Positions 435-51,969 of a DNA stretch of 64,000 nucleotides are shown in pieces (the stretch's first letter is position 1; each line of letters begins with the position of its first letter). Location: NCBI GenBank assembly GCA_001643675.2, contig LSRY02000008.1, positions 930,001 to 994,000 on the forward strand, written 5' to 3'. Below the pieces are notes generated by a model. The model was not told where the DNA came from and did no database searches. It worked only from the letters and a program-made list of their open reading frames with translations. The position numbers and the translations under genes were made by a program. The stretch comes from Monocercomonoides exilis PA203 (taxonomy: Eukaryota; Protista; Preaxostyla).

Positions 435-1619
435 ATGAGCTCCAATAGCGATGCTATTAACAATAAAACTAAAAATGAAACAGCTCTTTCAGAAAAAATA
501 GACGAACATTCTTTGAAGGACGAAAACGGAAGGAGTTCAGCAATGCAATTTACTGTTGCGAAGAAAACAGAACCACAAGAATGGATGAAAATAGAGGATG
601 AAAATGGAGAAAAGAATGGATTGAAAAGTTCCAACGAATCAACAACAAACATTAAAGCAAAATTATCAAAGGGAAAGTGTCTGGTCATCATTCTGTGTAT
701 CATACTTGTATGTGCAATTGCATTGATATGGATAGCAAATTATAAAATTGGCCCATTGAAATGGACGAGGCATTTCAATGAACTTGCAGACAATGGTGGA
801 AGAACAATGGCTATGAAATGGATTGAATATTTGAAGACAGAACCACCAAAATGGATGAGGCATAGAAGTTCGTTTCCTGATAAAGACGGTAAAACAATGG
901 CCATGCTGTGGATCGAACTCGTGAAAGCAAATCCACCAGAGTGGATGAGACATGACATAACACTAAATGATAACTTTGGATGGACAATGGCGATGCTATG
1001 GATTAGATATGTTGGAACTGATCCTCCAGAATGGATGAAACACGAGATTACTCTTACTGACAAGAATGGAAGAACAATGGCAATGTTGTGGATTTATTTT
1101 GTTCAAACAGAACCACCAGAATGGATGAGGCATGATATTAAACTTGTGGATAACAATGGATGGACAATGGCAATGAAATGGATTCAAGACATTAACACAG
1201 AACCACCAGAGTGGATGAGGCATGATGCCTTGCTTGCTGATAAAGAAGGGAGGACAATGGAAATGCTATGGATAGGATATAATGGAACAGAACCACCAGA
1301 GTGGATGAGACATGATTATTTATATGCAGACAAAAATGGATGGACAATGGCGATGCTATGGATAAGTTATTTTGGAACTAATCCACCAGAATGGATGAGG
1401 CATAAAAATGAATTTAAAGATAAGGAGGGGAAAACGATGATTGATTATTGGGAAAGATATGTGAGAAGAGAGATACCGGAATGGATGAAATACAATGAAT
1501 TTGTTGTTGCTGCTGATGATAATGGAGCGACAGATGCAATTTGTTGGTTCAAGGAAATGTTACAAAAGCATCAGAACCGAAGTGGAAAGAAAATACACTT
1601 GAAGTTGAAGATAGAATAG
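435..1619 (+). CDS. Membrane-anchored Trp/Met-rich 30-aa ankyrin-like repeat protein (paralog A)
   Basis: First in-frame ATG at 435 of ORF 363..1619. One hydrophobic helix (CLVIILCIILVCAIALIWI), then 7 repeats HDxxLxDxxGxTMAMxWIxxxxTEPPEWMR and a terminal 'TMIDYW' cap repeat. The 3' tail degenerates; a repeat-like remnant continues in another frame at 1541..1753. Confidence 0.8.
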   Translation: MSSNSDAINNKTKNETALSEKIDEHSLKDENGRSSAMQFTVAKKTEPQEWMKIEDENGEKNGLKSSNESTTNIKAKLSKGKCLVIILCIILVCAIALIWIANYKIGPLKWTRHFNELADNGGRTMAMKWIEYLKTEPPKWMRHRSSFPDKDGKTMAMLWIELVKANPPEWMRHDITLNDNFGWTMAMLWIRYVGTDPPEWMKHEITLTDKNGRTMAMLWIYFVQTEPPEWMRHDIKLVDNNGWTMAMKWIQDINTEPPEWMRHDALLADKEGRTMEMLWIGYNGTEPPEWMRHDYLYADKNGWTMAMLWISYFGTNPPEWMRHKNEFKDKEGKTMIDYWERYVRREIPEWMKYNEFVVAADDNGATDAICWFKEMLQKHQNRSGKKIHLKLKIE

Positions 1620-2916
1620 AGAGGGGAATAATATGGATCTATTTATTCAAAAAAGTGCCCTTGCCATCACGAATGAAACAATGCATTGCAGTTGGAGATG
1701 AAAGCGTGAGGGCAAGCATAGAATTAGAAGCACCAGAAATGGAAGATGACTGAAAATTCCACACGAGTGATTGAATCATTTCCATTGAGGATATTATTTC
1801 TGAAGCATTGAACAAACAGGCTAACAGATTTGCATGTGTGTAAATAAAGGCTATTTAGCAACATTTCGGAATTCATGACTTTTCTTTCTTTCTTTTATTT
1901 CTTTCTTTTCTTTCTTTCTTTCTCTCGATTCTTTGAATGCACTTTTTCTGTTTCAATAAATACTTGGACATGCTTCAAAGATATCTCATTTTGATCTCCT
2001 TTCGGTTTGCTTTCGATTGTTTTTATATTTTCCCAGAGCAATTGGAGCAATTAATTACAATATTTTGGTTTTTACAAATTATTTTTTTTTCACGTTTTTA
2101 TTTAATTTTATTTTATTTTGTGAAGTTTAGTTACGTTTTGTTTTAATTTTTTACAAAATAATTGAAATAATTTTAATTTGATTCTGTCAATAATCAAAGA
2201 TAAGCTCAAACCAGAAAATGTAGTTTTCTTTTATTTTTTCATATTTTATTTTTTGAAGTAACTTTTATACAATTTCGAGAAATAATTGGGCATGCTTCAA
2301 ACAAATTCGATTTTACTTTCTATTTTCTGATTTTATTTTGTAAGCTCATTTTATTTTAACTGGTTATGTGTTCTTGTCAGTTTTATTAATTTTTAAAAGT
2401 CAACGATTTCTGTAATTCTTACAAATTACTTTTTTTACAAATTCTTATTTTTCCATTTTGAGAACATTTCATGCATAAGAAACATTGAGTGACATACGTA
2501 GTTTTTATTCATAAATCGCGATAATTGAAATTTTATCTTTGAAAAAATATTTAGAAATGAAATCATATAAAGAGAAAACAGAAAAAAAGAGAAAACACTA
2601 AACTTGAAGATTTTGAATCTTCAAAATAGAAACTACGCTGAATTGGAAAAACAAAAAATTACATATTTCGAAGCACATAGCAAAGATATCATGTGTTGAT
2701 TGTGAAATATATTTTAAAATTAGCTTTACGAGTTACTTCCTTGTCAAAAGAAGAAGAGAAATCAAAAGGTAATGAAGAGATCTGAGATGGAAGCTAATGA
2801 AATTTCATTGAAGAAAGGAGTAAAATTGTTGGAACATTCGGAGTCATGTCAGAATCTTTTCTGTTAAAGAAGAATCAGTTGAATGCATTTTTGTAGAGAA
2901 ATGAAAATATTGATCA

Positions 2917-3609
2917 TTGAATGTGAATTTGGAAAGATTGTCTTTTCCATCCACTTCAACAAGAGACACTTCAGACACAGATTCAACGTTTGTTAGAGGT
3001 GAAGATCTATGTCCAACCACTTCATCCATGTCGAATCTGGTGGATGCAATGGCCTGCTCATCGCCTCATGAAAAGCTGATTGTGGATGTGAGGGATTCTC
3101 TGTTCATGCTGCTTCACGGAAAGAACAACACAAAGGAGATGGCAATTGGCACACTGGAAGAGAGGGAGCAGACAGCTGCTCAGATCCTGTTCTGGGTGGC
3201 TAATCTTGCTTCTCACTCATTTGATGAAATGGAAAATCCTCTTCAATCTCTTTCCAATTTGAGTCCTCACATTGTGTTGTTCTCTGAGCACATGGCGATC
3301 TGTGTTGTGATGCATTCTGACTTATTGTCCGATGATGATTCAGATTCTTCATCTATCTCATCATCAACTATTGTCACATCTGCAAGTGATGGTGATGATG
3401 ATGAAAATGATTCCCTTCCTTCATCCGCCTTTGAGGATGAAGATAGCTTCAAAAAAGAGTGTTTGAGGTGGAAGGCACCAGAGCTGCTGATCAACAGGAA
3501 GATGATGACAACAAAGGAATGGGTTGTGTTTTCAATTGGGATGATGCTGTGGGAGTTCTTGACGCTGAGGATCCCGTTTGGTAAATTTGAGGCAGAAAAA
3601 AGTAACTGA
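2917..3609 (+). pseudogene. C-terminal fragment of a tyrosine-kinase-like (TKL) family protein
   Basis: Subdomain VIII/IX-like motifs 'LRWKAPELL' and 'VFSIGMMLWEFLTLRIPFG' are present. There is no VAIK, HRD or DFG motif, the ORF has a TTG start, and upstream frames are broken by stops. Confidence 0.6.
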
Positions 3610-3902
3610 AATGGAGGTGAGTGGAAATTTGTCAGATTTCGAAGTCATGAAGAAGCCAATGCATTTAAGGTTGATGAAATAACTCATTCATCAAAAAATA
3701 AAGTGTCATTTTTTTTTTTAAGGAAAAAGGAATGAGAATAGATTTTTTTAACGAAATGGAAAATATCTGTTTTGATAATGCTCGTGTTTTTCGAAAAATA
3801 AATAATAAATTAAACATTCAACAATGCGATATTGCCATTGATGAATGTTTCAAATTTGCTTAAAGAATAATTTGAAACTTCCATAATAAAAAATTATTAA
3901 AA

Positions 3903-6140
3903 ATGTCGAGCTTTGATGTTCAGATTTATTTGTATGATTTAAGCCATGGAATGGTGCGGTCCATGTCGGCCATGCTAATTGGAAAAACTTTGGAAGGCCT
4001 GTGGCACACGGGGATTGTTGTGTAGTTTGAATTCAATTTTTCTTGAGAAATTGGCAATTTTTATTGGCGCTGTTGTTAATGGTCGCTCAAATTAATGCTT
4101 TCGCAATTCGACGCAAAAATGCATCATTTGTCAAGTGGCAAAGAATATTATTACAGCGGGGGCATTCAAAGGTTTCGAGCGATTTGATTATTGAGTTTTG
4201 ATGTTTGGCTTTTTGCTTCAAAAGCGATCTTCCAGCATGCTTATTTGGTGTTGCTGTATTGGGTCTAATTTTTGTTGCATATTTGTTTTGTTTCAGGGGC
4301 GTTCTGCAGCTGGTGCGCCGACGAAAATTATTCCGTTTGCTGAGTTAAATTTTTCTTTCGATTCTTTTTTCACAAAGAAAATGCGAACTTTCTGTAGAAT
4401 GGGGGAGACGACGATTCCGCAAGATGTGTTTGAGCAGTTCTTGAATGAAATCTCGCCTCGATACACGATGGGGTCGTATAATTTGTTGGAGCACAACTGC
4501 AACAACTTTACAAACGAGGCGTGCCAGTTCCTGACGGGAAAGCAGATTCCAAGCTGTATGATGTTTGGCTGTAAGTGAATTGAATTTTATAGTCTGGTTA
4601 TGAAAAGATATTATTGATCTTCCACGAGAATTTCTTTCCACTCCAGTTGGACAGCAGTTTAAGCCGTTGATTGATTCGTTTTTTGGAGGGGGAGATCCAC
4701 TTCAAGGAAGAGCAGTTGTATGGAAAATGATTTTTTCTTTCATTACTTACTTTCTTACTTATTTATTTTCCATAATTCCAAATATTCCTGTATATAATTT
4801 GTGGGGGGGTGGTGCAATGTGTGCAACAGCCAGGAGGGAGCTTTGGAGGCCAGGCGAGTGGAGCAGCAGGAGCAGCGTCTTCTTTCTCTTCTCCTTCTCA
4901 TTTTCCGATTTTGGGGGCATCTGCCAAGTACCTTTACGAGACAGGCAATTACGACCGCATCCTGGCGAAGCTACTTGAGAACCACACTCATTTCAAAGAA
5001 AGCTTGCTGAAAGCATCTTCTTCTACTTCTCCTTCTTCTCCTTCTTCATCAGCATCCATCTCCAATCCAGGTGTCCTGCAAGAATTCGATCTCTCTCTTC
5101 TGCAGTCGAAGGCCGTGAAGGACTTCTTCAGCTGTGTGCTGACACAGCACTCGCAGCAGACATCCAATGCAGCTCATTCGCCTCAATCGCTTCCAGCCAT
5201 CCCGGCAGGCGTTGTGGGTGTGCTGACGCGCCTGCGCTGCTGCTGGCCATCTGAGCTGCTTGTCCCTGTTGTCGACCTCCTTCGCATCCTCGCGCTGCAC
5301 CCGAAAGGCGCTGAGCTGCTCTGCAAAGAGCCTTCTTCCTCTTCCTCTCCTTCATCATCACCAACTGATGCAAAGCCCCGCATCCACGCCCCGCTGTCAA
5401 TAATCAACCTGTTCAAACAATATGCTCTTCCGAACTTATCATCATCATCATCATTCACCAACACATCCATTTCCTCTTCTCCTTCTCTTTCTTCTCTTTC
5501 TTCTTCTTCTTCTTCATTGAAGTCATCTCCAGCAGCAGCATTGCGGCTGGTGTGTATGCGGACAGCAGTGAATCTCTTTGCGAGTGAGACAGGCGCTGCA
5601 TTTGTGACGAGCCCAGAGCGTCTGCCGTTCTTTGTGGAGGCGGCTGTGTCGTGTGTGGAGGACAGTGGGAAAGAAAAAGAAGAAGAAGAAGCCAAAAGAG
5701 AAGAAGAGGGAAAAGGAAAAGAAGAAGCAGCGAGGGCAGCGCGTGGGGCAGCAGCGGTGCAGCTGGCGGGGTCGTGTCTGCTGCACAACATTGCCCTGCG
5801 GCTGGGAGAGCAGAAGGGGCAGTGCGAGGCGCTGTGCGAGGGCGGGGTGGCGGTGCTGGCGCGGGCAGTGCGGAAGGAGTGGGAGGCGAAAGGGGAGGAG
5901 TTTGCCAGGAACGAGGAAGACGTGCTGGAGGAGAGGCCGGTGGTGCTGGATGCGCTGGCCACGCTGCTGAAGGCGCTGGGCGTGGTGTGCCTGGACAACG
6001 ACGTGGCTGCTGCAGTTCTGGTCTCGTTGCCTGAGGAGGGCAGCATCGTAGACGCGTTGGCCGAGATGAAGGAGAAGCCGCAGTGGCTGCCTGTTCGGGG
6101 GATTGCTGCTGAGATTCTGAACATCGTTGAAATGGTCTGA
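3903..6140 (+). CDS. PPPDE/DeSI-1-family isopeptidase fused to a C-terminal PUL (ARM-like) domain
   Basis: Exons 3903-4024, 4136-4171, 4225-4234, 4297-4334, 4398-4555, 4608-4717 and 4830-6140 translate to MSSFDVQIYLYDLSHG...LWHTGIVVYGKEYYYSGGIQSDLPGRS...YNLLEHNCNNFT..., with catalytic His in WHTG and Cys in NCN. The last exon has PUL-like motifs WPSELLVPVVDLLRILALHP and RTAVNLF. Confidence 0.88.
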
Positions 6141-7380: not shown

Positions 7381-9114
7381 TCAACCGTTCATCCAAGATG
7401 GGACCTCAGAGTCAGCATGAATTCTCCAATGATCTGCCATAGTTTTTCCTTCCTTGTCTCTAATTGTTGCATCGTGCCTCATCCACTCTGGTGGCTCTGA
7501 ATTGATGCTTCTTATCCAATGCATGGCCATTGTCCGTCCGCTCTTGTCAGCAAGTGTGGGATCATGTCTCATCCACGCTGGAGGATCAGCTCTTACGCAA
7601 ATAATAAAATACATTGCCATCGTCCATCCGTCATTGTCTGCAAGTGTGCTTTCATGTCTCATCCATTCTGGAGGTTCTGTTTTCGCGTGTGTAATCCATA
7701 ACATGGCCATCGTATTCCCATTGATATTCCCTAATATTGCATCATGCCTCATCCATTCTGGAGGTTCTTTCTTTTCATTTTTTATCCACCGCATGGCCAT
7801 TGTCCATCCATCCTCGTCTGTAAGGGCTGCACTATGTATTATTTCTTCTTGTGGTCCTGTCTTCTTCTCAATAATCCAACGCATTGCCTCTGTTCTTCCT
7901 TTTTCATCAGAAAATGCAACGTTATTTATCATCCATTTCGGTGGTGCACTCTTGACATAACTTTTCCAATGGTCTGCCATCGTTTTCACTTTCTTATCCT
8001 TCAACGAATTATCATGTCTCATCCATTCTGGTGGCTCTGTCTTCACATATTCAATCCAGTTCATCGCCATAGTCTCTCCACCGCTATCGCGAAGTGTAGC
8101 ATCATGCCTCATCCATTCTGGTGGTTCTGTTTTGACATTATAAATCCATATCATTGCCATTGTGATTCCGTTCTTATTGCAAAGTGTTATATTGTGTCTC
8201 ATCCACTCAGGTGGTTCCTTTTCAACAAACTGAATCCACAGCATAGCCATCGTCCATCCAAAATTATTTCTGATTGTTATGTCATGTCTCATCCATATTG
8301 GTGGGTCTTTCTTCACAAATTGAATCCACTTCATTGCCATTGTTTTTCCTTCCTTGTCTGCAAGTGTGTTGTCGTGTCTCATCCATCCTGGTGGTTCTGT
8401 CTTTTTCTCAATAATCCACCTCATTCCCGGCGTTTGCCCATTTTCATCTTTCAGTGTTTCATCAAATGTCATCCATTTCGGTAATTCAGTTTCAACAAAT
8501 ATGTTCCAATAATCTGCCATTGCCCATCCTCTCTTATCTTTCAATGAATTACGATGCCTTATCCATTCTGGTGGTTCTGTTCCAACCCACATAATCCACA
8601 GCATTGCCATTGTTTTTCCTTCCTTGTCCGCAAGCGTGGCATCATGTCTCATCCATTCGGGTGGTTCTGTTTTGACATAAATGATCCACCTCATTCCCGC
8701 GGTTTGTCCATTTTCATCTTTCAATGTTTCATCAAATGTCATCCATTCTGGTAATTCAGTTTTAACAAATAATCTCCAATAATCCGCCATTGTCCATCCG
8801 CTCTTTGTTTTTAATGAATTACGATGCCTTATCCATTCTGGCGGTTCTGTTCCAACCCATATAATCCACTTCATTGCCATTGTTCTTCCCCAAATATCTT
8901 TAAGAGCATTATCGTGTCTCATCCATTCTGGAGGTTCTGTCTTCACATATTCAATCCACATCATGGCCATTGTTCTTCCGTTATTATCAGCAAGTGTAAT
9001 ATCATGTCTCATCCATTCTGGAGGCTCTGTCTTTTTCTCAATAATCCATCGCATTGCCTTTGTATCTCCATTTGCATCTTTCTCAGGATTCTTCGCATCA
9101 ATTTTGTTTTCCAT
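7381..9114 (-). CDS. Trp/Met-rich 30-aa ankyrin-like repeat protein (paralog B, 19 repeats)
   Basis: Intronless ORF with ATG at 9114 (MENKIDAK). 19 tandem 90-bp repeats arranged as four capped modules of 4+3+6+6. Confidence 0.88.
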   Translation of the reverse strand: MENKIDAKNPEKDANGDTKAMRWIIEKKTEPPEWMRHDITLADNNGRTMAMMWIEYVKTEPPEWMRHDNALKDIWGRTMAMKWIIWVGTEPPEWIRHRNSLKTKSGWTMADYWRLFVKTELPEWMTFDETLKDENGQTAGMRWIIYVKTEPPEWMRHDATLADKEGKTMAMLWIMWVGTEPPEWIRHRNSLKDKRGWAMADYWNIFVETELPKWMTFDETLKDENGQTPGMRWIIEKKTEPPGWMRHDNTLADKEGKTMAMKWIQFVKKDPPIWMRHDITIRNNFGWTMAMLWIQFVEKEPPEWMRHNITLCNKNGITMAMIWIYNVKTEPPEWMRHDATLRDSGGETMAMNWIEYVKTEPPEWMRHDNSLKDKKVKTMADHWKSYVKSAPPKWMINNVAFSDEKGRTEAMRWIIEKKTGPQEEIIHSAALTDEDGWTMAMRWIKNEKKEPPEWMRHDAILGNINGNTMAMLWITHAKTEPPEWMRHESTLADNDGWTMAMYFIICVRADPPAWMRHDPTLADKSGRTMAMHWIRSINSEPPEWMRHDATIRDKEGKTMADHWRIHADSEVPSWMNG

Positions 9115-10545: not shown

Positions 10546-10639
10546 TTTTTCTTCTTTCGTTTTTTTTTATATCTGCTACTTCGAGAATTTTGTTTGCGAA
10601 AACAGTCATTGTGTTGAAATCTGTTCATTCAGCATTAAC

Positions 10640-10685
10640 TTCCTCCTCCTCCTCCTCCTCCTCCTCCTCCTCATCATCATCATCA

Positions 10686-10731
<46 letters not shown>

Positions 10732-19304: not shown

Positions 19305-22300
19305 TCAACGATTAGCCCTCTGCCTCATCCTTTCATTCTCTCTTTCTCTTTCTCTCTCCCTGTCCCTCTCCCTGTCCCTTCCCTTCTTCTCTCTCCCATC
19401 CTTCCCCTCCTTCCCCTCCTTCCCGCTCTTCCTGAATTTCTTCACAAACGCTGCATACAACCTCGAGTCCTGTATGCTCACATCATCCGACTTCATATGC
19501 GCCGACAGAGACGGCGGGATGGCCAGCGGCCTTTCCAGCCTGTCCGGCGCCTGCTTCTCCAGCACCGATGTGGGAGCCTTCCCCACCAGAAACGCCACCA
19601 TGCCCCTGTCCGTCTTCTGCACATGCTCCCCAAACCAGCTCGACACTACCTCCACAAGCTCGGCTGCCACGTCTTTCCCCGCTTCCACCGCCAGGCACAA
19701 CTTCACCAGCTGCTTCGCAATCGCAATGTGCTCTGCGTAGTGCTGCTTCGTGTGACACGCTGGGTGCTTGTACCGGTGCATCAGCTCCTCCTCCTCGCTC
19801 AGCGTGCCAAAAAACGCCTTCACAAACAGCTCCAGCTTCTGCCCGATCTTCTCCGGTTCTTCCTCGTCCAGCGCCCGCACAAGCTCAAGCCCGCACTGGC
19901 ACACCACCTGGTGCCCGCTGTCGATAACTTGGATGTCCACTGAGTACACCTCCTTCCACATGAACGCGTCGAACGACTGGTCATTCGTCGGGTCGAAGTC
20001 GACAATCTTCGTCGTCGCCTCCGCCACACGGAACAGATGGTTGCGCGAAGGGAGGAAGCAGAATGTGTAGGAGCCAATGAGAAGCAGGAAATGGATGATA
20101 AACAGCACAATCAGCAGCACGTTGTACGTGCGGATCGTGCTCGACTGCTCCTCTGTCAGAATCTCCCCGTATTTCTTAATCCCTCCTTTCAAATCATACT
20201 GCATTTCTGTGTTCACCATCTGCAGCCTTGTGTCGTTCAGCCACAGAAGCGACACATTGTCTGCCCCTGCAAACGACTGTGCGCTCATCGCAAACGACGT
20301 AATCAGCCCATCCAGCCCTGCAAACGGCGGCGTCAGCCCAAAGATCCTCCCTTTCTCCTCGCACTCGCTGCTCACCATGTTCGGGATGCACTCAACTGTA
20401 TCCATCATCAGCCCGCTCAGTGCAGAGCCAGGAACAAGCGTGCGGATCGTGTCCAGCGAGTCGATCAGATCGTCCCCTGTCGCCACCCCGCCGCTCAGCG
20501 CACACCCACCTGAGTTCACTTTCTGCTGCAAAAGAGCAAAGAACGTGATCGTCTGGTTCATCAGCTCCTGCTGCAGCGTCTGGTTGTTCGACATGTGCGA
20601 CAGGTCGTGCCAGAGCGGGGAGTGGCCGTACGGGTACATGTAGTTCATGGGGATGGTGTTAGAGGACGGGTATGCAGTGTTCATCATCAGCATCGCGCAG
20701 AGGCCGATGAGGATGGAGCGGTAGGACGAGAGGAACATGGCGCTGTTGGAGCTGATGACGTTCTCGATCGACTCGGTGCACACGAAGTAGAACGCAAACG
20801 CACTCAGCAGCACCATCAGCGTGCCCATCGTCATCAGCAGCACGATCCCCTTTGTCACAACATGCGTGTTTTTCTTGATCTGCTCCCGCAGCTCCTCGTT
20901 CCTCTCCGCCTCTTTCTCTTCTCTCAGCGCTCTCTGCTCATCTTCCACTTCCAGTTTCGCCTGCTCGTTTTGCGCTGCAAGGAAAGTAGTCTGCTCGTTG
21001 TACCTGTCGCCCACTCCGCAGCTCTCGTTGTTCATCGTCAGCAGCTGGCTTCTGAGTGCTCCTGACTCTGTTCTTCTGTGATGGGAATGAGAATGTTGAG
21101 AATGAGAATGCTGAATGTGATGTTGACTGTGATGTTGATAAGGATTCTGTTGTTGATAGCAACTTCTTTCTCCCAAATAGCTGCTGTATTCGTGACTCAT
21201 GCCGCCTCTTTTAGTGTTGCCTGGCTTGGAACGTGAGGTGTTGTAATCAGAAAATTCATTCACTTTCAGAAATATATTGTTTGCTCCTTTATTGCTTTTC
21301 TCTCTTCTTCCGTCTCTTCTTTTTTCTTCTTTATTTCTTCCTCTGCCATCTTTTCTGTTATTTTTGGTCAGCCTGCTATTAAATGAAGAAGATGAAAACG
21401 ATGATGATGAATCTGAATCTGAAGAAGAAGAAGAAGAAGAAGAAACATAACTCGAAGCGGAAGATAATTCCGCAGTTGACGCATCTGTCAAATTGCCGGA
21501 AAAATCACCTCTTTGTTTTTGTTTTGGGTCCAAATGCTGCCCATAATAAATATTCGAATTATTAATTTTGTTATTTCTATCATTTCCACCATGTTTATGT
21601 TTATCTTCATGTTCATTTTCTTCATGTTCATCTTCATTTCTGTGATTATGCTTGTGCTCATGTTTATGCAAATGTGTTTGAAAATGTTTGTTTTCGTTTA
21701 GACTCACATAATTGTAAGGCGAAATGGTCGAATCAGCAGAAAGCGAAGAAATAGCCTGCATTGGAATGAGAGGAGCATTTATTTGAGAAGAAGAAGAAGA
21801 AGAAGAAGAATATGTTGGGTTATTATTATTATTATTTATATTATTATTATTGTTATTATTATTATCCATTGAATTTTCTCCTTTTCTTCTTCTCTTCTTT
21901 GAAGAAGAAGAGGAAGATGAAGAAGAGGAAGAGAAAGGGTTAGAAGAAGAATTTGAAGAAGAAGAAGAAGAAGGCAATGAATTTTGAGTTGTTTGTGTTG
22001 TTTGTGTGTTTTGCACTCGAAAAGACGGTGTTTGCAGCAAAACGCCAGCGGAAGGGTTTTTTTGGATGGAAGAAGAATTTAAAGGAGAAGAAGAAGAAGA
22101 AGAAGAGGATGAAGAGGAAGAAGAAGAAGAAGGATAAATGCCTTGGAAAGGGGTGAGAGGGGAGAAGAAGTTCATTTGTGGCTGAGGCTGAGCGAAAAGA
22201 TAATTTTGGGATGGATTATTAACATTGGAAGAAGGAGAAGGAGAAGAGGAAGAGGAAGAAGAAGAAGAAGAAGAAGAAGAAAGAGGAGAAGAAAAAGAAG

Positions 22301-25300
22301 GAAAAGGAAAAGAAGAAGAAGGAGAAGGAGAGGAGGAGGAGGAAGAAAGAGGAGAAGAAAATGTTTGTGAAGGGATAAAAGGAGAATTCGCAAAGTTTGA
22401 AGAGAAAGATGAAGTGAAGATATCAGGTGCTGTGTATGGGGTGTTGAAAGGAGAAGGAGAAGAAGAGGAAGAATTTGAAGAAGAAGAAGAAAACGTTTGA
22501 TTTCCTTCTTTTTCATTCGAAACATCCATTTTGACTTGCATTTTGGCTGAATTTGCTTGTCTTTTTGAGCGTTTTTCTTTCGAATTTTTTGAAGAAGAAG
22601 AAGAATTAAATGAAGAAGCATTTGAAGAAGAAGAAGAAGAAGAGAAAGGAAAAGATGAAGCAGGAGAAGTGGAAGGTCTTTGAGAAGAAGAAGAAGAAAA
22701 TGGATAAATTCCGCTGCTGCCGCTAAAAAATAGATTATTTTGTTGTGGGAGTACCTGATTAGAAGAAGTTATTGTGGTTGAAAGAGGAGAAGAGGCGAAC
22801 TGAGGAATATTTGAAGGAGAAGGAGAAGAAGGAGAAGAGGAAGAAGAAGAGGAAGAAGAAGAATTATTCGCAAACTTTTGATTTGTAAAATTTAATGAAT
22901 TTTCTTTCTCTTTCTCTTTTTCTCTTCCTTCCTTCCCTTTCTCCTTCAAACAACTTTGCGTATTTCTTCTCTTTCTTCCTCCGTTTTTTTCTTCCTTTTT
23001 TTGTGTCAAACAAAATTTTTCCTCTTCTTTTCTGTCATTTAACGCACTTTCTTGACTGGTTATCAAATATTTCTGTTGAACCTGTTTATTTTGATCGTTT
23101 TGTGAATGCACGTAAACTCCTCCTCCTCCTCCTCCTCCTCCTCCTCCTCCTCCTCCTCCTCCTCCTCCTCCTCCTCCTCCTCCTCCTCCTCCTCCTCCTC
23201 CTCCTCCTCCTCCTCCTCCTCCTCCTCCTCCTCCTCCTCCTCCTCCTCCTCCCTCCTCCTCCTCCTCCTCCTCCTCCTCCTCCTCCTCCTCCTCCTCCTC
23301 CTCCTCCTCCTCCTCCTCCTCCTCCTCCTCCTCCTCCTCCTCCTCCTCCCACACTTTCTCCTCTACATTCTCCTCTTCCTTCTCCTCTCCCCTTTCTTCC
23401 CTTCAACTCATCCGTTGTATCACTCAGCCCTTTCCCTTCCTCCTCCTTCATCTCCTTCATCTCCTTCATCTCCTTCATCTCCTTCATCTCCTTCATCTCC
23501 TTCATCTCCTTCATCTCCTTCATTTCTTGTATAACTCCTCCTCTTTCTCCTCTTTCTCCTCCATTTCCTCTTTCTCCTCCATTTCCAACTCCTCCTCCAA
23601 ACAAAGGCACATCATCTTCCTCCCCACACTCCTTCTCACTTTCTTCCAGCCTCCTCTTCAGCTTCGCCACCTGCTTCTTCGGCGCTGTGAAGAACAAAAA
23701 CAGCGTTTCTCTTCTTTCTCTCGTCAACTTCCTCACAGTCACATACAGCTGAACTAGCAGCCACACTGTCGTGAATGCAATGGCAAGCGACCCCAGCACC
23801 ACGTCCAGCACAACCGTTGTCGTTCCTTCTCTTTGTGAGTGCACCACGCAGTTGTACACCATCTCCTTGAAATGCTCTGTCATTGCTACAGGCACGTTCG
23901 CGCGGAAAAGGAAGATGGAGTCCAAAATAGGCTTGGAGACCGTCAGCTCTTTCATCTTCGTGTAGTCAAGAGAAGCCAGCTCAAATATCTTCACCATGTC
24001 GATGATGTTGCTTTTGGTCCATGTCATATCCACAATTTTGGGCCCGATGCAGATCGGGATGGTCAAATCCAGCGTTTCTCTTTCCAAAAACAAGAACTCC
24101 AGGTTCTCCTTCGTGTTTCTGTACACGTTGCCCAGCTGCTCTCCCATCACGTTGCTGTGCAGAAGAGAAGACGAGGCAATAATCTCAAAAGGTTGGATGA
24201 ACACCAAGTTCGTCAAGTTTTTTGGGACGGTGAGCGACAAGCGGAAATACATCGAATACAAAAACGCATCGAACGTGGCGACCTGCAGATAGGAGATGTT
24301 GCGGATGAGGTTGCAGTACCTGACAGTCGTGTTGAACGTCTGCAGCGTCATCAAAAACGCCACGACACCCGCACAGAACACAATCAGGAACGAGATGATG
24401 AGCGACGGGCGCAGCATGGGCAGCAGGTCCTCCTTCTCTTCTGTCAGCCGCAGCACGTTCTGCATATCTTTTGTCCTCGACGCCACAATCGCCTCTCTCT
24501 TCTTCCGCTTCGCATTGCTGTTCTTTCTCGACCGCGTCGCCAGCACTTTTGTCCGCGACGCAAACGACACCTGCTCATCCGACACCTTCTCGCTCCACAC
24601 TGAAAGCCCCACCCGACTCACTGCATTCGACCTTTCCTCGGTGATTGTGTGTGTCTGCGACACTTCCTCCTCCAAGTCCCCCGCCAGTGCAAACATCGCC
24701 CTTGCTCCTTCGTCGTCCCTCTCCACATCCCGTATGTGCGCTCCATACGCCCGGATCACCTGGCAACTCTGTGGATAGCTCTGCAGAAGCAGCACATACC
24801 TCTCTGTTGCAAGTCGGTTCTCCCTCAGCACTGCCTCCAGCGTCTTCACCGCTTTCCCCACATCCACATTCTCCTTCAGCATCAGCGTCCACAGCTGCAA
24901 CAGATACACTTTTGCGGCTTCGGTGTGCTTTTGAGCAGCTGACAGCTCCATCTTCATCAAAAGCGCTGCTGATGCCCGCAGCGACATCGACTGCGTCAGA
25001 AAGCTGCTTCTGCTCCCGTTGTCGTCGCTGATGATGTCCAGCTCTGCCGAATTCATCGCACTCACCCCACAAAACACGCCGCTGCTGTTCACACTTCCGA
25101 TTGGCCCTGCTCCTATTGTTCCACCTATTGGTCCTCCTCCACCAGCACTTCCACCTCCAAATCCCGCCATGCTGCTGTTCGCACTCAACGGCACAGAAGT
25201 CATCTGCGATGCTGGCAAAAGCGCATACGGCAGCGCATTCTGTGTGTTAGAGAAGGAAATGGAAGCAGCACGCGACATGCTCATGGGAAAGACAGAGGAA

Positions 25301-26162
25301 GAAAAGGACATTTGTGTCTGATTTGGCTGAGAAGGGAGCAGAAGCTGTGTTTGCGTGCTGCTTTGAGAAGAGGCAGGAAGAGGGAGAGAAAGAGGGAGCG
25401 GGAGCGGGAGAGGAGGAGAAGCCGAAGGAGTAACAAAACAAGAAGTAGCTGGCGACTTGAAACCACTTCCTCCTCCTCCTCCTCCTCCTCCATAGCCCCC
25501 AATTCCATTCATTCCATTCAACCCTCCATTCAACCCTCCATTCAACCCTCCAAACGCACTGAAAGCGCTGCTGTTATAAGCAGCTGCTGATTCTTCCTCG
25601 CTGTCTGCATCTGAAGTCAATCTATAAACCACCCACCGCTCGATCACATTCGGAAAGCACTGCTTCATGTTCCTCAGTGAGTCCATCATCCTTGCTGTGT
25701 TCTTCACAAAATATCGATAAAACAGCGCATTCGCCATCCACACTGTCGACACGTCGCGATGCTTTTGCGTCGCTTGGTGCAGCAGAGAGCAAGCCAGTTG
25801 CAGGCATTTCGGGTCCTTTCTGAGCTTTTTTGTTGTGATGAAGCGGCAGGCGTTGATGTACTCGGAAGGCGTGCGGTATTTAGGGGTCATTTTCGGTTTG
25901 TGTGGAGGAGATGGTTGAGGATTTGAATGAGAACTTGAATGAGGATTTGAAACAGAATTTGAGAGGTTATTTGGACCAGGTTGCTGGTTTGTGTGTTGAA
26001 GTGGGTGTGGGTGTTGATGTGGGTGTTGGAGTGTGTGTGAATGGAGAGAAGAAGCTGGAGTGAAGGAGGCAGAGGAGGTGGAGTGGGAGAAAGGTGAAGG
26101 GGAAGGAGAAGAGGAAGAAGAAGAAGAAGAAGATGATGATGATGATGAGGAAGAAGAAGAAG

Positions 26163-26193
<31 letters not shown>

Positions 26194-26968
26194 GGAAGGA
26201 GAGGCAGGGGAAGAAGGAGAAGATGATGATGATGAAAGAGTTGGAGATGAAGAAGAAGAAGAAGAAGATTGAGGCAGAAGCGTTGCTTGTGGAGAAGCCA
26301 GCAAAGAAGGTGAGTCAGAATTCGAGTGATTGGCAGACTTGCAATCAGAAGAGAAAGAAGAAGTGCGTTGAGGCAATGAAGAAATATGAGAAGAAGAAGA
26401 AGCAGACGACAAGAGGTTGTGAGAAGAACGAGGAGAATGAGGAGAATGAGGAGAATGAGGAGAATGAGAAGAAATATCAGAAGAAGAAGAAAGAGAACGG
26501 GGAAAACAAGAGAAGTTTGAAGAAGAAGAAGAGGAAGAGGAAGAAGAAGAAGAGGAGGAGGAAGAAGAAGGTGATTGGGGGCGGGCTAGAGGACGAGATT
26601 GAGGAGAAGAAGAGGAGGAAGAAGAGGAAGAGGAAGAAGAAGATGATGATGGAGCAGGAGGTTGTAGAGAGGGAGAAGGAGAAGGAGAAGGAGAAGGAAT
26701 GGAAGAAGAAGAAGAAGCAGTCATTGAAGAAAATGTCACGTTGGATAATGGATGAGATGAACGGGGTGAAAGTTGGGTTGAAAAGGAAGGAGAAGAAGAA
26801 GGAGAAGAGGAAGAGGAAGAAGAAGAAGAAGGTTTTATTTGTTGTTGGTGAAGTGACACAGAAAGTGAAGTGTTGTGAGGTGAAGAAGAAGGAGGCAATG
26901 GAGAAGAGTTTGAAGAGTTTGAAGAGGAAGAGGAGGATGAGGAGGAAGAGGAGGAAGAGGAAGAAGAG

Positions 26969-27000
<32 letters not shown>

Positions 27001-28536
27001 AGATGCCAACAGAGCCGGATGAGGTGATGCAGCTATTTGTGGATGCAACAGCGCACTTTCTCTCTCATGCCCTTGCTTCGCTTCACAAGTCGATGGGATA
27101 TCCACCATTCTTTCTCCTCCTCTTCCTCTTTCTCCCTCTCCTCCTCCTTCCCTTCCTCCTCCTAACCTTTCTTCTCTTCCTTCTCTTCCTCCTCCTCCTC
27201 CTCCTCCATCGCCAAAATGCACTCCGCTCCTCCTGCTCCTCTTCTCCCTCACGATCGGTACCTCGTCGTCCTCCCTCATCGCCCACTGGTGCCTGCTCCA
27301 CCACCTCCCAAATGCAGCCCCAGCCACCCCGCCTGCCACATCCAGCACGAGAAACAGCACAAACAGACCCACACGCACGCCCAGTGACGGCGAGGGAATA
27401 TTTTCTTCTGGTTTTCCCTTGAAAAGGCGGGTGGAGCAGAGGATGACGATGACGTAGAAGAAAAGGGTGAAGGCGACGAGGCCGGAGATGATGCCGTTCC
27501 CTTCGGCGATGACGTAGGGCTGGCAGTACTGCACGAAGAGGTAGCCGAGGAAGAGGAGGGCGACGGCGATGCTGGCGACAGTGGTGGGGAGCGTGTCGAA
27601 GATGATGCTCAGCACAACCAGGATGGAATAGAGCGTGGTGCAGATCACACTCCCCAGCCCTGTCATCATCGAGAACACATTGTCTGGGTAGTGGTGCAGG
27701 TTGGCGTTGAAGTTGAACAGCCGCACTGTCATCGCTATCAAATAGTGCAGCACACAAAATATCAGCCCGCATATATACAAGCACAGATGGCCCCTGCTTT
27801 CGCACCCCACGTTGTAAAACTCGTTCACGGTCGTGTTCCTGCGATAGCAGCTTATATGGCTCGCAAAGACATTAAAAATTGGCAGATAGAAAATGGTCGT
27901 GGACAACTGAATAAAAATGGAGCATATTTTGATCAAAATATCTGGAAGTTTTTTTGTTTTTTGGCTCCCAATAGTCACTATAACTGTAAAAATCCACCCA
28001 ACAAGCATCGTTATAAGACAAATGTAGAACATAACCAATGAAAAAGTTGGAGAGGACCAACAAATGCTGAAATCCAAATATCTTTATTTTTGAAAAATGA
28101 ACTCGAAAATGAAAATATCTGAATGAAGGAAAAATAATGTCACACCTAAAAAAATCAATTATGTACTTTCGAGCTGGTCCATCAAAAGGCCAATCCATCA
28201 TGCGAATGCCAATGCCGGCTAATTGAAAAAATGCAATAAACCGTTGCAAAAGTTGAAGAATAAATGAGAAATTTGCGTGCTTTTTTAAAATTTAAATGTT
28301 ACAATTTTGAAAATATGAACATAGAGCATTAGTGATGTGGCAAACTTTGTGAATAGGATATATGATGGAAAAAACCCTTTGTAATTAAATGAAATACAAA
28401 TCAAAGAATGCATTAAAAATATTCAATACCATTCATCCCAGCCAGATTCATGCCCGATATAAAAAGCATTTTGGTGCTGCTTGGTCGAAAAAAATGTTGC
28501 AGTATTTGACTGCTGCCCTTCTTCTTTGAAGGACAT
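19305..28536 (-). CDS. ~3000-aa multi-pass TmcB/TmcC-like membrane protein with TPR-like module and C-terminal hemerythrin-like domain (1-nt frameshift in a (GGA)n tract)
   Basis: Candidate ATG at 28536 (MSFKEEGQQ...) with short AT-rich 5' exons; one splice gives FFR|YLDFSICW, but not all 5' junctions were resolved. Then an N-terminal TM bundle, a TmcB-type TPR-like segment (YVLLLQSYPQSCQVIRAYGAHIRDVERD), two TM-flanked ~200-aa luminal domains, and a hemerythrin motif W..YSV...ID..H...EE.LM...H...H...W..H....D. ORFs 23086..28077 and 19305..23354 join into one frame if one C near 23251 is removed. Confidence 0.75.
23117..23350. repeat. (CCT)~77 coding microsatellite with a single extra C near 23251
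   Basis: Pure CCT run interrupted once by 'ccctcct'. It encodes poly-Gly on the minus strand. Confidence 0.95.
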
Positions 28537-45840: not shown

Positions 45841-46339
45841 TGAAATAGGCAAATTGGATATTATTATAAAGGGACTTCGCCCATTAATTTTTATTTTTTT
45901 TCTATTGGTTCAAAATTAATTCGAATTCACTTCTTCGTTTCATAACTTCATTTTTTTCAAGAAAAAAATATAACTAACAATCGACAAAAATATGTGAAAG
46001 ATATTTAATTTTTGCAGTCGATGAAACCATTTCTTGCCAATGATTCAATCTATTTTCATTCAGAACAATTTGACAACTTCAATCAAAACAAACCAGAAAC
46101 TTTTATTCAACCAGAGAATCATGTAAATTTCTCCGACGAAAAAACTATTATGGGAGATGGAGCAAACAAGGAGCTTTAATTAACAGCACAAAACATGGTC
46201 ACATTTGATTCTGATTCCATTACTGGTAAATCACCTTATTTCTCTCTCTTTCCATCAACTCTTCAGAATAATAATTTTTCCAATCAAAAAATTCAGTTCG
46301 AAAATATACCGAATCATTTTGAGATTGAAAAGAAGGAAA

Positions 46340-46890
46340 ATAAGAAGAGGAAGCCAAAAAAGAAATGGAATGAAATGAGTTTGATGATGCACTTTGGACG
46401 AACTGGGCGAAAAAGGCGAACAAGACTCATTTGAAGAAAATGCAGGCATAATGAACAGATTCGAATTACATAACAGCCAACAGCAACAACAAATGGAAGA
46501 ATTATTCCGTGTTGCAACATGAGAATTTGATGGTCAATAAGTTCTCAATAACGAAGAAGATGATCTTTTCATCAGCCAAATAAAAAAAATCTCGTCAGTG
46601 AAGAGATCGAAGGAGAGTGAGAAGAAACCCTATTATCTCCAAAAAATGCTGCTTGATATGGATTGTCCATGGAAATGGAGCTCAACACAAAAAAATGCTG
46701 TTTGCTGGAATGGAAAAAAGATATTAAATAAAATAATAATAATTAGTTTTGCTTAAATTATAAAAATTCCTCAAAAGGACACATGCACCCTCCCTATCGC
46801 AAAAGCAGAAGATTGCTTTATCACCGTAGCTGTCAATCTCCTTTTCCATTATTTCTCAGTGCTCAATTCTCCATCATCCTTTTTTCACAC
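46340..46890. repeat. Inverted copy of the 10000-10545 repeat
   Basis: Reverse-complement similarity with 10000-10545; boundaries are approximate. Confidence 0.8.
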
Positions 46891-49800
46891 ATAAATATAC
46901 TGCTTTCTATGTTGTCATCCATTTTCCTCATAAAAAAATATTTCTTCATTTTTCCTCTTCAAGAGCCGTCCTATTGTTGTTATTCCTTTTCACTCTCATC
47001 CAAATGCTTTGAAATCGAATTTATTTTCATCCCCTCTCCCAACTGAATACAAAAAATCTGCAATTCACATCTGCTGATTTTCTCTCGGCATAGCTCTCTT
47101 CTTATGATCTCCTCAGAAAATCAAAGGAATGGTTATTTGTATAATCTATCAGATTCTTGGACTCTGAAAAGATGGTTTATAAAAGCATTTTCTTTACAAA
47201 CAATAACGATAAAAAACGCAAACATCATGATTTTTATATGCTATTTTGGAAAATGTATTTCCTTCAAAGATGCTTTTCATAAAAATCATCTCTCCCAATT
47301 CCATCATCAATTCCCCCCTTCGCTGTTTCATTCCACCACACAAAATAATATCGCCTGTCCTGCAGAAAATATTCGCTTAATAATCTTTCATCTTTCCAAT
47401 GGTTAATTTCGTTCAAAGAAAACGACTCGATCAGATCATCCATTACAATAAACCTGAAAAGTTAAATCATTGTTTTATTCTGTGAAATATCTAGCCAAAA
47501 ATGTCATTATTCAGTTTGATGACGTGAATGCATACATTTTCATGACTATTTTGTGTTTTCTATTTTTTGTTGTTTTGCCTTTGAAGGATGTTTTTGTTGA
47601 ATGCGAATGGGAAATTGGGGATGGCTTCTGTGTTTCTGTGGATTTGCAAAAATGCAGGAGAAGGGGGTATTAAAAGCATTCACCAGTTTGGAAACATTGA
47701 TTCCCTTGAATTCGAAATGACTGAGATGATTTCTCTCTGTCTCTCTTTGTTAATTTTTTTGTTGAATCGATAAATGTGCTGGCACACGGAAGAGAAAGGA
47801 CAGAAACAGAAAATGGAAGAAGAAGAACAATTTATGTCTGCTCCGATGCCTGAAATGCTTGACAAAACGAAAATGAATAATAACGAATGAAGAAAAGAAA
47901 AACAACAATGGAAAATTTAATGCAGCAGTTGAAGCATTTGAGTTATTGCAAAGAACTGAATGGAACAAGGATTGGTCGTTTTGTTAATCCTTTACCGAGT
48001 TGAAAAATTGGATCGATGATTGTTGATGAAGAAGAGAATGATGAAAAATCACTGATTGTCCTTTTCGAATGATGTTTTTCATCGCATGATTGACTTCGTG
48101 ATTTGTTGAAAAATAGTTTGAATAAACGTCAAAAAGCGGAAAGGTCTGTTTTGAGGTCGAGGAGCTTTGGTGAATGGAATGCATGATTTCACTTGTTTCA
48201 TTAGTGATGATTTTGCAATATATTTTTTAAGTGTTGATAAATTTAGGTTTCTTCAAAATGATAAAATCGAATGAGATGTCATCAGAATCCCCTCAGCAAC
48301 ACTAAACTTGGTATTGTTTGTTTTATTGAGGATGTTTTTGATGAACAGATGATTCAAAGGAAAACATGTAGAAGAGATCATTGCAGATGGGCTGTGTTCA
48401 GTGAGAGAAGTGAACAGAGAATGGGAAAAGAAAGGGAATGGAAGTGGCTTTGGAAGAGGATTATTGGAGGAAGAAAACAAAATGAGAAGAAGAGAAAGTT
48501 GAAGAGATTGAAGTTATAAGCAGAGGTGGGATATGAAGAAGAAGAAGAAGAAGAATGGAAAAAAGGCTTGACGTCTGTAATGGGGAGTGATGAGCCGCAG
48601 AAAATGAAAGTGAAAGAGAAGCATTCTCAGAGGAATGAAGAGAGGAAGAAACTGGAGTTAGGACTGTGGGAGATAATGATTGCAGCAGAGATGTTACCAC
48701 AGAAATTCATGCACTCATTAACGAATATGTGGAAGAACCGAAAAAAAGTGAAGGAGACAAAGATGAAAAATAAGACAAAAGAAGAAAGAAGAAGAAATAT
48801 GGCGAAGAGAAAGAAGAATATGAAGGAGAATAGAAGGAAATGGTTGGATCAGTTGTGCAGACGATAATTGGCCATATTTCTTGTTTATTAATTCGATAAC
48901 CAGATTGAGCATCAAAGTCAACAACAGAACAGACACGAATAAAAGATGGAGTGTACCTGCCAATATTTCTCCCACAAAAGTGAACAAGAAGCATCAAATG
49001 CTCTGAAAGGGTTATCCAGATTGAGCATATCACATCCTCCTTTGTTATTCACATCTTCATTCCCATCACCAGCTCTGACATCTTCCACCTCAAAGACTGA
49101 TGAGGGCATAGGGATTTCGTCCTCCTCCTCACGATCACTCATGGATGGAATGGCTGTTGATGAAGAGATGGATGAAAACATCGCACACTCAGTGAATAAT
49201 GAAATGTGCGAATATTAATCAATCATTGAAGATTATTCTTTGTCTTCATGAAATGAATGGAAGATATTATTTCCCACCACAAATGGGAATTGAACAGCTG
49301 TTTTCGTTTCATTCATCTCGTTTCTTCTGCCCAACAACAAAAACAGCGAACCCCTCAAATCCACATTCATTTCATTGGTTTAATCATATTCAACACGAAT
49401 GAAGTGGTTGGATATAAATTCTCCTGAATGACAAATGTGGATTCTGTTTCTGTTGTTGAAGTGAATGGAAAAGAAAATCTTTTCCAATTCTCATTAAAAG
49501 AATCATGTCTGAACATTTTGCTAAATATGCATTCAGCTGAACCTTCTTCAGCAGAAAAGATGTTCAGAAGATTGTGATTGATCCATTTGTTTTTCTCCTT
49601 TCTTCAATGACATTTCCATTGTTTCCATCTCAAACAGTTCATGAGTCTTCTTTATAAAATCATTCATACTCTCTCCTCGAGGTTTTCTTCTCTTCATCTG
49701 TTTGCCTTCTTCCACAATTCGAAAGAGACAGAATTCAATCGGAACTATGATTTTTGTCATTCAGATATGTTTGAAGAGAATTTCTCACACTTCAATAAAT

Positions 49801-50676
49801 GAGTTTTCAACAACACCAATGGAGTCTATTTCACAAAAGGATTTCCTTTTTTAATAATCAATTTTATTTTTTCACACATATTATTGTGAATGTGATTTGT
49901 TAATGCGATATGAAAATGCATATTTCTTCGAACCTTTTTTTTATAAATCATTTATGTGACACTTACATATATTTGTAATGTCTTTCTCAAAATCTTCACT
50001 TTGTGTGACATCAAATGAACCATCTGAATGTCAAAGTTCATGTTGTCTTTGCGAATATTCTGTGTTTTTTGCAAGACAGCAACAAAACACTCTCAATTCC
50101 CAAAAATGAACAAATATGAGCCAATTATTAACTGAATCGCAACTGTTGAATCTGATCAAAATGGCTGCAACAAAATCGTCAAAGCACAACAACCAAGAAT
50201 AACAGTTCTCTCAACTCCAAATCACAGAAATGCTCATTTCATTTTCAAAATGCCAAAGTGAATTTTCAATCACATTGGCAAATTGGAAAAAAGAAAAATA
50301 AAAAGAAAACAAGATGATTTGAATTGAGATTTTCTTTCACTATTTGCAAAATCAAATAAAAATGAGACTGGTAAATTTTCAGACAAAAAAAAATATGAAA
50401 AAATAAAAGCAATGAAATGAAATGAATCGCTTAAATTTCATACAAAATGAAAAAAAAAAATTTATTGAAGATGAATAGAAAGGTTATCAAAATGATTCTT
50501 GTTTGAAGAATATCCGAGTGTTTGCAGAAAGTTAGAAAGTCACTTCAAAAGAAAGAAAGAAAGAATAATCATGCATTTCGATAGGCCGTTGAAGAGCCTT
50601 TATTGAGAAACCAGTTAATCAGCTGATTCATTGGAAGCATCTAAAATGACACTTTCAATGCAAATAAGACAAACAC

Positions 50677-51969
50677 TCATGCGGTTTTATCAATCGTCAT
50701 CCATTCCGGTAGTGCACCCTGGACATCGCTTTTCCAATAATCTGCCATCGTATTTCCTTTCTTATCCTTCAACGAATAACTATGTCTCATCCACACTGGC
50801 GGTTCTGTTTTCACAAACTGAATCCATAGCATAGCCATTGTTTTCCCCTCCTTATCGCTAAGTGAAATGGCGTGTCTCATCCAGACTGGCGGATCTGTCT
50901 TCACACCCCAAATCCATATCATTGCCATCGTCCACCCATCCTTATCATAAACTGTGATGCTGTGTCTCATCCATTCTGGTGGCTCATTCTTAACAAACTG
51001 AATCCACAGCATCGCCATCGTCCATCCATCCTTGTTTTGCAGAGTGATTTCATGCCTCATCCAACTCGGTGGTTCTGCCTTCACACCCCAAATCCATATC
51101 ATCCCCATCGTCCACCCATCCTTATCTCTTTGCGTCTTATTATGTCTCATCCATTCTGGGGGTTCAGTCTTCACATTCTCTATCCACAACATTGCCATTG
51201 TTCGTCCAAACTTATCGGCAAGCGTGTTGTCGTGTCTCATCCATCCCGGTGGTTCTGTCTTGTTCTCAATAATCCACCTCATTCCCGGCGTTTGTCCATT
51301 TTTGTCTTTCAATGTTTCATCAAATACCATCCATTTCGGTAATTTAGTTTTAACATATATTTTCCAATAATCTGCCATCGTTTTCTCTTTCTTATCCTTC
51401 AACGAATTACAATGTCTCATCCATTCTGGTGGTTCTGTCTTGACATGAAAAATCCACTTCATTGCCATTGTCCGTCCGCAATAATTAGTAAGTGTAATAT
51501 CGTGTCTCATCCATCCTGGCGGCTCTGTTTTAACGTCTTGAATCCATATCATGGCCATTGTTACTCCGTTATTGTTGCGAAGTGTGATGTCATGCCTCAT
51601 CCATTTCGGTGGATCTGTTTTGACACATGCAATCCATAGCATACCCATTGTGAATCCGTCCTTATTGTCAAGTGTGATGTCATGCCTCATCCATTCCGGT
51701 GGCTCTGTCTTTACATTTTCAATCCATATCATGGCCATTGTCCATTCGTCATTGTCTGCAAGTGCAACATCGTGTCTCATCCATTCTGGGGGTTCCGTGT
51801 GGGTAAATCCAATCCACAACATTGCCATTGTCCAGCCATTTTTATCATGAAGCGTTGTTTCGTGTCGTATTTCCGATGGAGGATCTGTCATTTTCTCAAC
51901 AATCCATCGCATTGCTTCTGTTCTTCCATTCTTGTCCCTTATCAATGGATAACTTTCCAATTTTTGCAT
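50677..51969 (-). CDS. Trp/Met-rich 30-aa ankyrin-like repeat protein (paralog C, 14 repeats)
   Basis: Intronless ATG-initiated ORF with two 7-repeat modules. Each starts with an 'MRWI' cap repeat and ends with a 'TMADYW' cap repeat. Confidence 0.88.
   Translation of the reverse strand: MQKLESYPLIRDKNGRTEAMRWIVEKMTDPPSEIRHETTLHDKNGWTMAMLWIGFTHTEPPEWMRHDVALADNDEWTMAMIWIENVKTEPPEWMRHDITLDNKDGFTMGMLWIACVKTDPPKWMRHDITLRNNNGVTMAMIWIQDVKTEPPGWMRHDITLTNYCGRTMAMKWIFHVKTEPPEWMRHCNSLKDKKEKTMADYWKIYVKTKLPKWMVFDETLKDKNGQTPGMRWIIENKTEPPGWMRHDNTLADKFGRTMAMLWIENVKTEPPEWMRHNKTQRDKDGWTMGMIWIWGVKAEPPSWMRHEITLQNKDGWTMAMLWIQFVKNEPPEWMRHSITVYDKDGWTMAMIWIWGVKTDPPVWMRHAISLSDKEGKTMAMLWIQFVKTEPPVWMRHSYSLKDKKGNTMADYWKSDVQGALPEWMTIDKTA

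Follow-up and report, generated by a model that had tools for sequence, protein, structure and literature searches.

A lineage-expanded family of 30-residue repeat proteins in Monocercomonoides exilis, best read as a highly derived branch of the ankyrin repeats

Canonical ankyrin repeats, and the designed ankyrin repeat proteins (DARPins) built from them, consist of 33-residue units of the type DxxGxTPLHLAAxxGH..., in which a hairpin, an inner helix and an outer helix stack into a solenoid. Arrays whose scaffold is fixed while certain positions are hypervariable also exist in nature. The ANK, TPR and WD repeats of the fungal NLR-like (STAND) proteins expose a hypervariable binding face and are proposed recognition repertoires; their repeats are nearly identical at the DNA level, are reshuffled by recombination, and have been reported to be under positive selection. 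TALE and PPR repeats likewise combine a strict period with a di-residue that varies while the scaffold around it is fixed. Among metamonads, the Nek kinases and Protein 21.1 of Giardia carry TALM-ankyrin repeats and form large, dynamic families, some members of which have a C-terminal RING finger (Manning et al., 2011, PMC3218828). Here we describe a family of repeat proteins from the oxymonad Monocercomonoides exilis PA203, represented by three genes (A, B, and C) in a window of 64,000 nucleotides (contig LSRY02000008.1, positions 930,001 to 994,000). Judged from sequence profiles and predicted models, the 30-residue repeat of this family is best read as an ankyrin derivative that has expanded in this lineage, has diverged strongly, and retains its outer helix as a vestige only.

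Genes A (435..1619, plus strand, 394 residues from the ATG), B (7381..9114, minus strand, 577 residues from the ATG at 9114), and C (50677..51969, minus strand, 430 residues) are intronless open reading frames (ORFs) built almost wholly of 30-residue repeats. We numbered the repeat in the register H1 D2 x T L x6 D7 x x G10 x T12 M A M x16 W17 I18 x19 x20 V K T E P25 P26 E W28 M R30. The 30-residue frames keep this register without insertions or deletions along nearly the whole of each protein, with a few residues left over at either end, giving about 10 units in A (degenerate ones counted), 19 in B, and 14 in C. The resulting 41–43 units match the approximately 41 repeats that a first-pass annotation of the window had assigned to three ORFs, all of which are present at the coordinates claimed. 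All 31 sites in the window with a PPxWM codon pattern fall inside the three genes, where shuffled sequences expect 0. Tandem Repeats Finder reports periods of 90 and 180 nt at the three genes. The 180-nt periods, together with an alternation of R and W in gene A, had suggested a two-repeat super-period, which proved not to be general, as the identity at lag 2 equals that at lag 1.

We computed the per-position entropy over 493 internal repeats from a family set of 24 ORFs, for which 20 paralogous loci had been retrieved. The earlier description of a nearly invariant scaffold with hypervariable positions agrees with the result. Positions H1, G10, T12, M13, A14, M15, W17, I18, P25, P26, W28, M29, and R30 each stay below 0.75 bit, positions 6, 9, 11, 16, 19, and 20 reach 3.1–3.5 bits, and positions 2, 3, 4, and 8 are moderately variable (2.0–2.6 bits). 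The ankyrin-like DxxGxT signature is kept, with D7 in 63% of the repeats (N in 26%), G10 in 89%, and T12 in 98%, followed by M13, A14, W17, and I18 in 91–99%. The positions randomised in DARPins by Binz and colleagues in 2003 are reportedly 33, 2, 3, 5, 13, and 14. When D7 is aligned to the first D of the DARPin module, they correspond to positions 6, 8, 9, 11, 19, and 20 of our repeat. All six are within the top seven of the 30 positions by variability (P ~1.2e-5), five of them in the top six and the sixth ranking seventh. The variable residues do fall on the DARPin paratope positions, as had been claimed, although such an overlap is what homology to ankyrin predicts. Unlike DARPins, the family has an additional variable position 16 on helix 1, and positions 16, 19, and 20 occupy the helix face opposite to the conserved residues 13, 14, 17, and 18. 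Tyrosine, phenylalanine, and tryptophan together make up 19% of the residues at the variable sites (4.9% for tryptophan), and proline is almost absent; this composition leans towards a functional surface without proving it. The six-residue signatures are unique in 412 of the 493 repeats, and the di-residue at positions 19–20 occurs in 111 types with an effective number of 54.

We predicted the structures of the proteins B and C with AlphaFold2 from paralogue alignments, obtaining predicted local distance difference test (pLDDT) scores of 86.5 and 90.8, respectively. According to DSSP, each repeat in both models contains one helix of 8–9 residues within positions 12–20 and a helical turn of three residues at positions 26–28. 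The two predicted models thus agree with the proposed loss of ankyrin helix 2. The top 50 structural matches were all ankyrins or DARPins, both with Foldseek (best E 2.4e-12) and with VIA-align, and the ESM Atlas, searched by features as well as by shape, returned ankyrin clusters only. The first seven repeats of C superimpose on the DARPin 6moj with a Z-score of 14.8 and 3.3 Å over 199 residues (VIA-align) and on Nas6p with 2.9 Å over 191 residues; overall, seven 30-residue repeats fit seven ankyrin repeats at 2.9–3.5 Å. Twelve repeats of B align with repeats 13–24 of AnkB (Z 19.5, 4.3 Å over 348 residues). The predicted solenoids therefore resemble ankyrin domains with Z-scores of 14–19.5 and root-mean-square deviations of about 3–4 Å, even though the second helix is reduced to a three-residue turn. 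These superpositions do not bear out the non-canonical fold previously suggested; the family is, as modelled, a variant of a common protein-binding fold and not a new fold.

Profile comparisons point to the same origin. When three family repeats were compared with three TALM-type ankyrin repeats, hhalign gave 87–93.5% probability (E 2e-7 to 4e-6), against 0.1–1.1% for reversed and column-shuffled family profiles, so the comparison with ankyrin profiles that had been proposed as a check came out in favour of homology. The alignment sets DxxGxT on DxxGxT, in line with the register match noticed at first, and the residues by which the two units differ in length fall behind W28-M29, where helix 2 ends. 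Two intermediate proteins, P0007 and P0029, match the family profile with E 2.5e-60 and 3.8e-32 and score 29.8 and 30.3 bits with Ank_2, above its gathering threshold of 27.3, providing a transitive link of the family to ankyrin. A search of the profile against PDB sequences returned chance titin matches only (E >=0.24). The three-residue turn at the place of the outer helix, like the missing Pfam ankyrin match described below, is also what would be seen if a new fold with a Pro/Trp strand for helix 2 mimicked the ankyrin motif by convergence. We regard such convergence as very improbable in view of the repeat-for-repeat superposition on ankyrin at about 3 Å, the profile–profile homology with clean controls, and the intermediates above the Ank_2 cut-off.

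Compared with canonical ankyrins and DARPins, the family shares the DxxGxT hairpin, the register of helix 1, and, in the predicted models, the stacking. It differs by its length of 30 instead of 33 residues, by TMAM-WI in place of TPLH-AA, and by the PPxWM turn that takes the place of the outer helix. The 30-residue period that had been put forward as a distinguishing feature is confirmed, yet it is not unique to the family, as a strongly recognised Pfam ankyrin among its relatives (P0133) has periods of 30 and 31 residues. We propose that each unit keeps the ankyrin hairpin (DxxG), an inner helix capped by threonine (TMAMxWIxx), and the stacking geometry, whereas the outer helix would have collapsed to the Pro-Pro-x-Trp-Met turn, whose tryptophan and methionine probably fill the core. 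The units would stack as curved, ankyrin-like solenoids.

The models and the sequences further suggest that some of the arrays are punctuated by polar caps, so that a protein would be a string of solenoid modules. Capping repeats are an established concept for ankyrin repeats (PMC8683736), and DARPins carry polar caps at their array ends; in our family, cap types start and end the proteins and, unlike in DARPins, also occur inside them. Within B and C, an N-cap type repeat, ..G[QR]T.[AG]MRWIIEKKTEPP.. (..MRWIIEKK..), directly follows a C-cap type repeat, ..KTMADYWK.YVKT.LP.WM[TV]. In the C-cap type, the conserved M15 is replaced by D and I18 by K, and in the N-cap type V21 is replaced by K. 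As with ankyrin caps, the replacements are polar and fall where no neighbouring repeat would pack. The caps divide the 19 repeats of gene B into four modules of 4, 3, 6, and 6 repeats, and the 14 repeats of gene C into two modules of seven, in both of which five internal repeats stand between an N-cap and a C-cap. The first junction in gene B (8647..8826, minus strand) joins a C-cap type repeat (8737–8826) to an N-cap type repeat (8647–8736) and coincides with a pLDDT minimum of 68 at residues 121–130. The same pair of cap types forms the second (8377..8556, minus strand; minimum of 70 at residues 211–220) and the third junction (7837..8016, minus strand; minimum of 66 at residues 391–400), and many structural alignments end or start at residues 396–400. 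At the junction in gene C (51235..51414, minus strand; C-cap type at 51325–51414 and N-cap type at 51235–51324), the pLDDT dips over residues 205–250 and structural alignments break at 216–219. The junctions in B predicted from the sequence at residues 126/127, 216/217, and 396/397 coincide with the three lowest internal pLDDT blocks, and these dips arise although most of the aligned paralogues run continuously across the junctions. A clear rigid-body break is seen in the model of B at the third junction only, whereas the first two are modelled as continuous stacking. The caps are hence real sequence features, and the models partly support their role as domain borders.

The searches of the genome and of protein databases proposed in the first-pass annotation uncovered many paralogues and 251 relatives, whereas the viral set, IMG/VR, contained no relative of the family. 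A word-based search of 5.8 billion proteins gave a single match, and the other relatives emerged only when 1.84 billion cluster representatives were searched exhaustively with the profile, which gave 251 proteins at E<=1e-3, 37 of them at E<=1e-30. The best relatives are metagenomic proteins with the same T-x-A-M-x-W-I ... P-P-x-W-M-x-H repeat. Among the best 150 of the 251 relatives, 13 have a C-terminal RING finger and 12 have a Pfam Ank_2 match. The fully recognised ankyrins among the relatives (P0103, P0133, and P0136) are of the TALM type; P0133 reaches 772 bits with Ank_2 and ends in a RING finger. The similarity to the TALM-ankyrins of Giardia extends to several features. Both are large, dynamic, mostly ankyrin-only families of metamonads, and the motif lies at the equivalent place, GxT-ALM in Giardia and GxT-MAM in Monocercomonoides. 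The recognised ankyrins nearest to our family are TALM-type with 30–31-residue periods, and the C-terminal RING of some Giardia members has its counterpart in the metagenomic relatives. However, the Giardia repeats retain the sequence of a complete outer helix and are detected by Pfam, neither of which holds for our repeat. The exact TALM motif is not found in the family, which has T-M-A-M instead, and the whole genome contains one DxxGxTALM site.

Two metagenomic contigs carry tandem family paralogues on the same strand, namely L028 (JGI 3300037045, 29-4919) and L029 (ENA ERZ27247346, 3-8359). Each contig is tightly filled with four to seven such paralogues and otherwise uncharacterised small genes, and the source could be a protist or a large virus. 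A relative on a third contig (L027) has ordinary eukaryotic neighbours. The M. exilis genome gave no match to a capsid protein of nucleocytoplasmic large DNA viruses, a result without bearing on a giant-virus origin, as control genomes were equally silent. A more far-reaching picture may be entertained tentatively, in which a natural one-helix ankyrin, its whole outer helix layer replaced by the PPxWM turn, forms self-capped strings of modules that supply the cytosol with a large set of specific binders. Besides an amitochondriate protist, uncultured organisms or perhaps viruses would possess such proteins, encoded in tandem arrays and in some cases fused to a RING E3.

We estimated the ratio of nonsynonymous to synonymous substitutions (dN/dS) from pooled Nei–Gojobori counts, once with 346 nearest-neighbour repeat pairs and once with 32 non-overlapping four-repeat blocks. 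The scaffold, with a dN/dS of 0.14, is under clear purifying selection, which indicates real genes. The ratio is 0.4–0.5 at the moderately variable and 0.5–0.9 at the hypervariable positions, and the pooled counts gave no value above 1 at variable positions. The idea of a repertoire diversifying by an excess of nonsynonymous change, as originally proposed, is therefore not sustained. Whatever the lag between them, repeats have a nucleotide identity of about 0.68; there is neither concerted evolution nor a general two-repeat unit. In its dN/dS and its repeat identity, the family differs from the fungal STAND repeats, and it also lacks a NACHT or NB-ARC domain. It had also been suggested that each repeat might recognise one ligand. 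The strict period, the fixed scaffold, and the hypervariable di-residue after WI would indeed suit a protein that reads nucleic acid or some other polymer module by module, in the manner of TALE or PPR repeats, with one ligand unit per repeat. Such a code is most improbable, since the 111 di-residue types (effective number 54) form no small alphabet and the proteins, with isoelectric points of 5.7–8.7, have no net basic charge; moreover, the fold is that of ankyrin, which typically binds proteins.

We consider it likely that the family is a derived ankyrin branch nearest to the metamonad TALM-type repeats, most likely functioning as cytosolic protein-binding adaptors or scaffolds. The 24 family ORFs consist of repeats nearly end to end, and no signal peptide or other domain was found in them, in keeping with a cytosolic adaptor. 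The binding site would be the concave face, to which the hairpin tips contribute the variable positions 6, 8, 9, and 11 and the inner helix, on its exposed side, positions 16, 19, and 20; these variable residues presumably lie at the surface. Several observations weigh against this interpretation. Pfam recognises no ankyrin family in the three proteins even at E<=1, and none of the 34 canonical sites found by a genome-wide Ank_2 search lies in the repeat family. The structures of B and C are predictions from shallow paralogue alignments. P0067, a bacterial-looking Sel1/TPR protein, scored E 1.4e-22 on the family profile, which implies that E-values between repeat proteins are inflated; the case for ankyrin ancestry is for this reason carried by the convergence of structure, hhalign controls, and intermediates, and by no single number. 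Neither the 24 family ORFs nor a search with the RING tail of a relative revealed a RING- or kinase-fused member in this genome; the best RING match, considered as a candidate for such a fusion, was an unrelated Arg/Glu-rich protein. Finally, relaxed constraint explains a dN/dS below 1 at the variable sites as readily as ligand-driven diversity does.

The last point is central to a less probable alternative that nonetheless deserves weight: proteins of the same derived ankyrin fold might be scaffolds that provide bulk structure or associate with the cytoskeleton, a role that has been proposed for Giardia Protein 21.1, with the variable sites forming an unconstrained, near-neutral surface. Apart from the dN/dS values, which never exceed 1, the equal divergence of repeats at all lags gives no hint of active repeat shuffling, and the roles of the Giardia TALM-ankyrin families have themselves been called obscure (PMC3218828). 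On the other hand, the abundance of tryptophan and other aromatic residues and the near exclusion of proline are not a plain neutral composition, and the largely unique six-residue signatures are held in intact ORFs. 

The family extends far beyond the window. In the assembly of 82,301,135 bases in 101 contigs, a protein search found at least 227 matches with open frames of up to 1,661 residues, and the strict PPxWMRH codon pattern occurs at 1,584 sites, compared with 0 for the reversed control. The genome thus carries at least 1,584 such repeats, about 0.2% of its 82 Mb. Among the best 100 matches to gene C, 51 lie between 44 kb and 1.05 Mb on the 1.96-Mb contig that contains the window and makes up 2.4% of the genome; this clustering suggests local expansion, although the count is biased by ranking on similarity to a gene from the same contig. 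Exact contigs from four RNA libraries of one study cover positions 50316–51913 (minus strand of the window), that is, the gene C ORF and about 360 nt downstream, whereas the flanks at 49800–50100 and 51921–52800 have none. This evidence consists of assembled contigs for the gene C region only; with gene C as the example, the family is probably transcribed. One could still ask whether the repeats are non-functional DNA, a decaying family or a selfish element with incidental open frames, because the genes lie in AT-rich, transposon-bearing stretches of a genome reported to contain 35% unclassified repeats (PMC8767320). The low dN/dS of the scaffold, stop codons in merely 2 of the 150 matches listed, and RNA-library contigs confined to gene C make this hardly credible.

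Individual members show further features. Gene A begins with a degenerate first repeat, followed by a hydrophobic stretch at residues 82–103 (nt 678–743), seven internal repeats and one C-cap type repeat (nt 771–1490), and a conserved C-terminal tail (nt 1491–1616), all on the plus strand. The hydrophobic stretch, CLVIILCIILVCAIALIWIA, is transmembrane-like and unique to gene A. It may be a decayed repeat rather than a transmembrane segment, because its second half aligns with a degenerate repeat helix (..AIALIWIANYKIGPLKWTR). The tail, which follows the last cap and has an acidic stretch and then ..IKEMLQKHQNRSGKKIHLKLKIE, is common to a subfamily of paralogues (L006, L012, L016, and L020), and this type of tail has no Pfam match. 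Four other paralogues (L003, L008, L010, and L017) begin with MGNxxG[SA]; the N-termini of L008, L010, and L017 match the pattern for N-myristoylation, a hint that some of the paralogues are attached to membranes.

The family genes have a G+C content of 34–39% and are set between GC-richer conserved genes. A gene with a PUL domain (4809–6140, plus strand; 49% G+C, PUL E 2.6e-13) contains long serine runs, and the ORF on the opposite strand over it is probably spurious. Two giant GC-rich ORFs of 1,349 and 1,663 residues (19305–28077, minus strand) contain acidic and serine-rich low-complexity runs, with TPR_TmcB as the sole Pfam match. Two DNA-transposase ORFs lie on the minus strand, one with an IS1595/ISXO2-like DDE domain (58086–58781, IS1595/Merlin-like, E 1.3e-18) and the other with DDE_1 (61507–62643, E 4e-11).

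The searchable literature contains no paper that ties Monocercomonoides to an ankyrin family and none with the motif strings. We found no description of the family there. Our preferred reading is that of an ankyrin subfamily, strongly derived, and not of a new fold. It shows that a large gene family can escape standard domain annotation, as none of its at least 1,584 repeats is detected by Pfam, and it probably sits among the unclassified repeats of the genome of M. exilis, a model for eukaryotes without mitochondria. For research on repeat proteins, the family is a natural test case of how much of the ankyrin unit can be lost while the units still stack, and it supplies internal capping repeats of natural origin; it also links the oxymonads to the enigmatic TALM-ankyrin expansions of Giardia. 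The RING-fused relatives suggest that such repeats may serve in substrate recognition for ubiquitin ligases.

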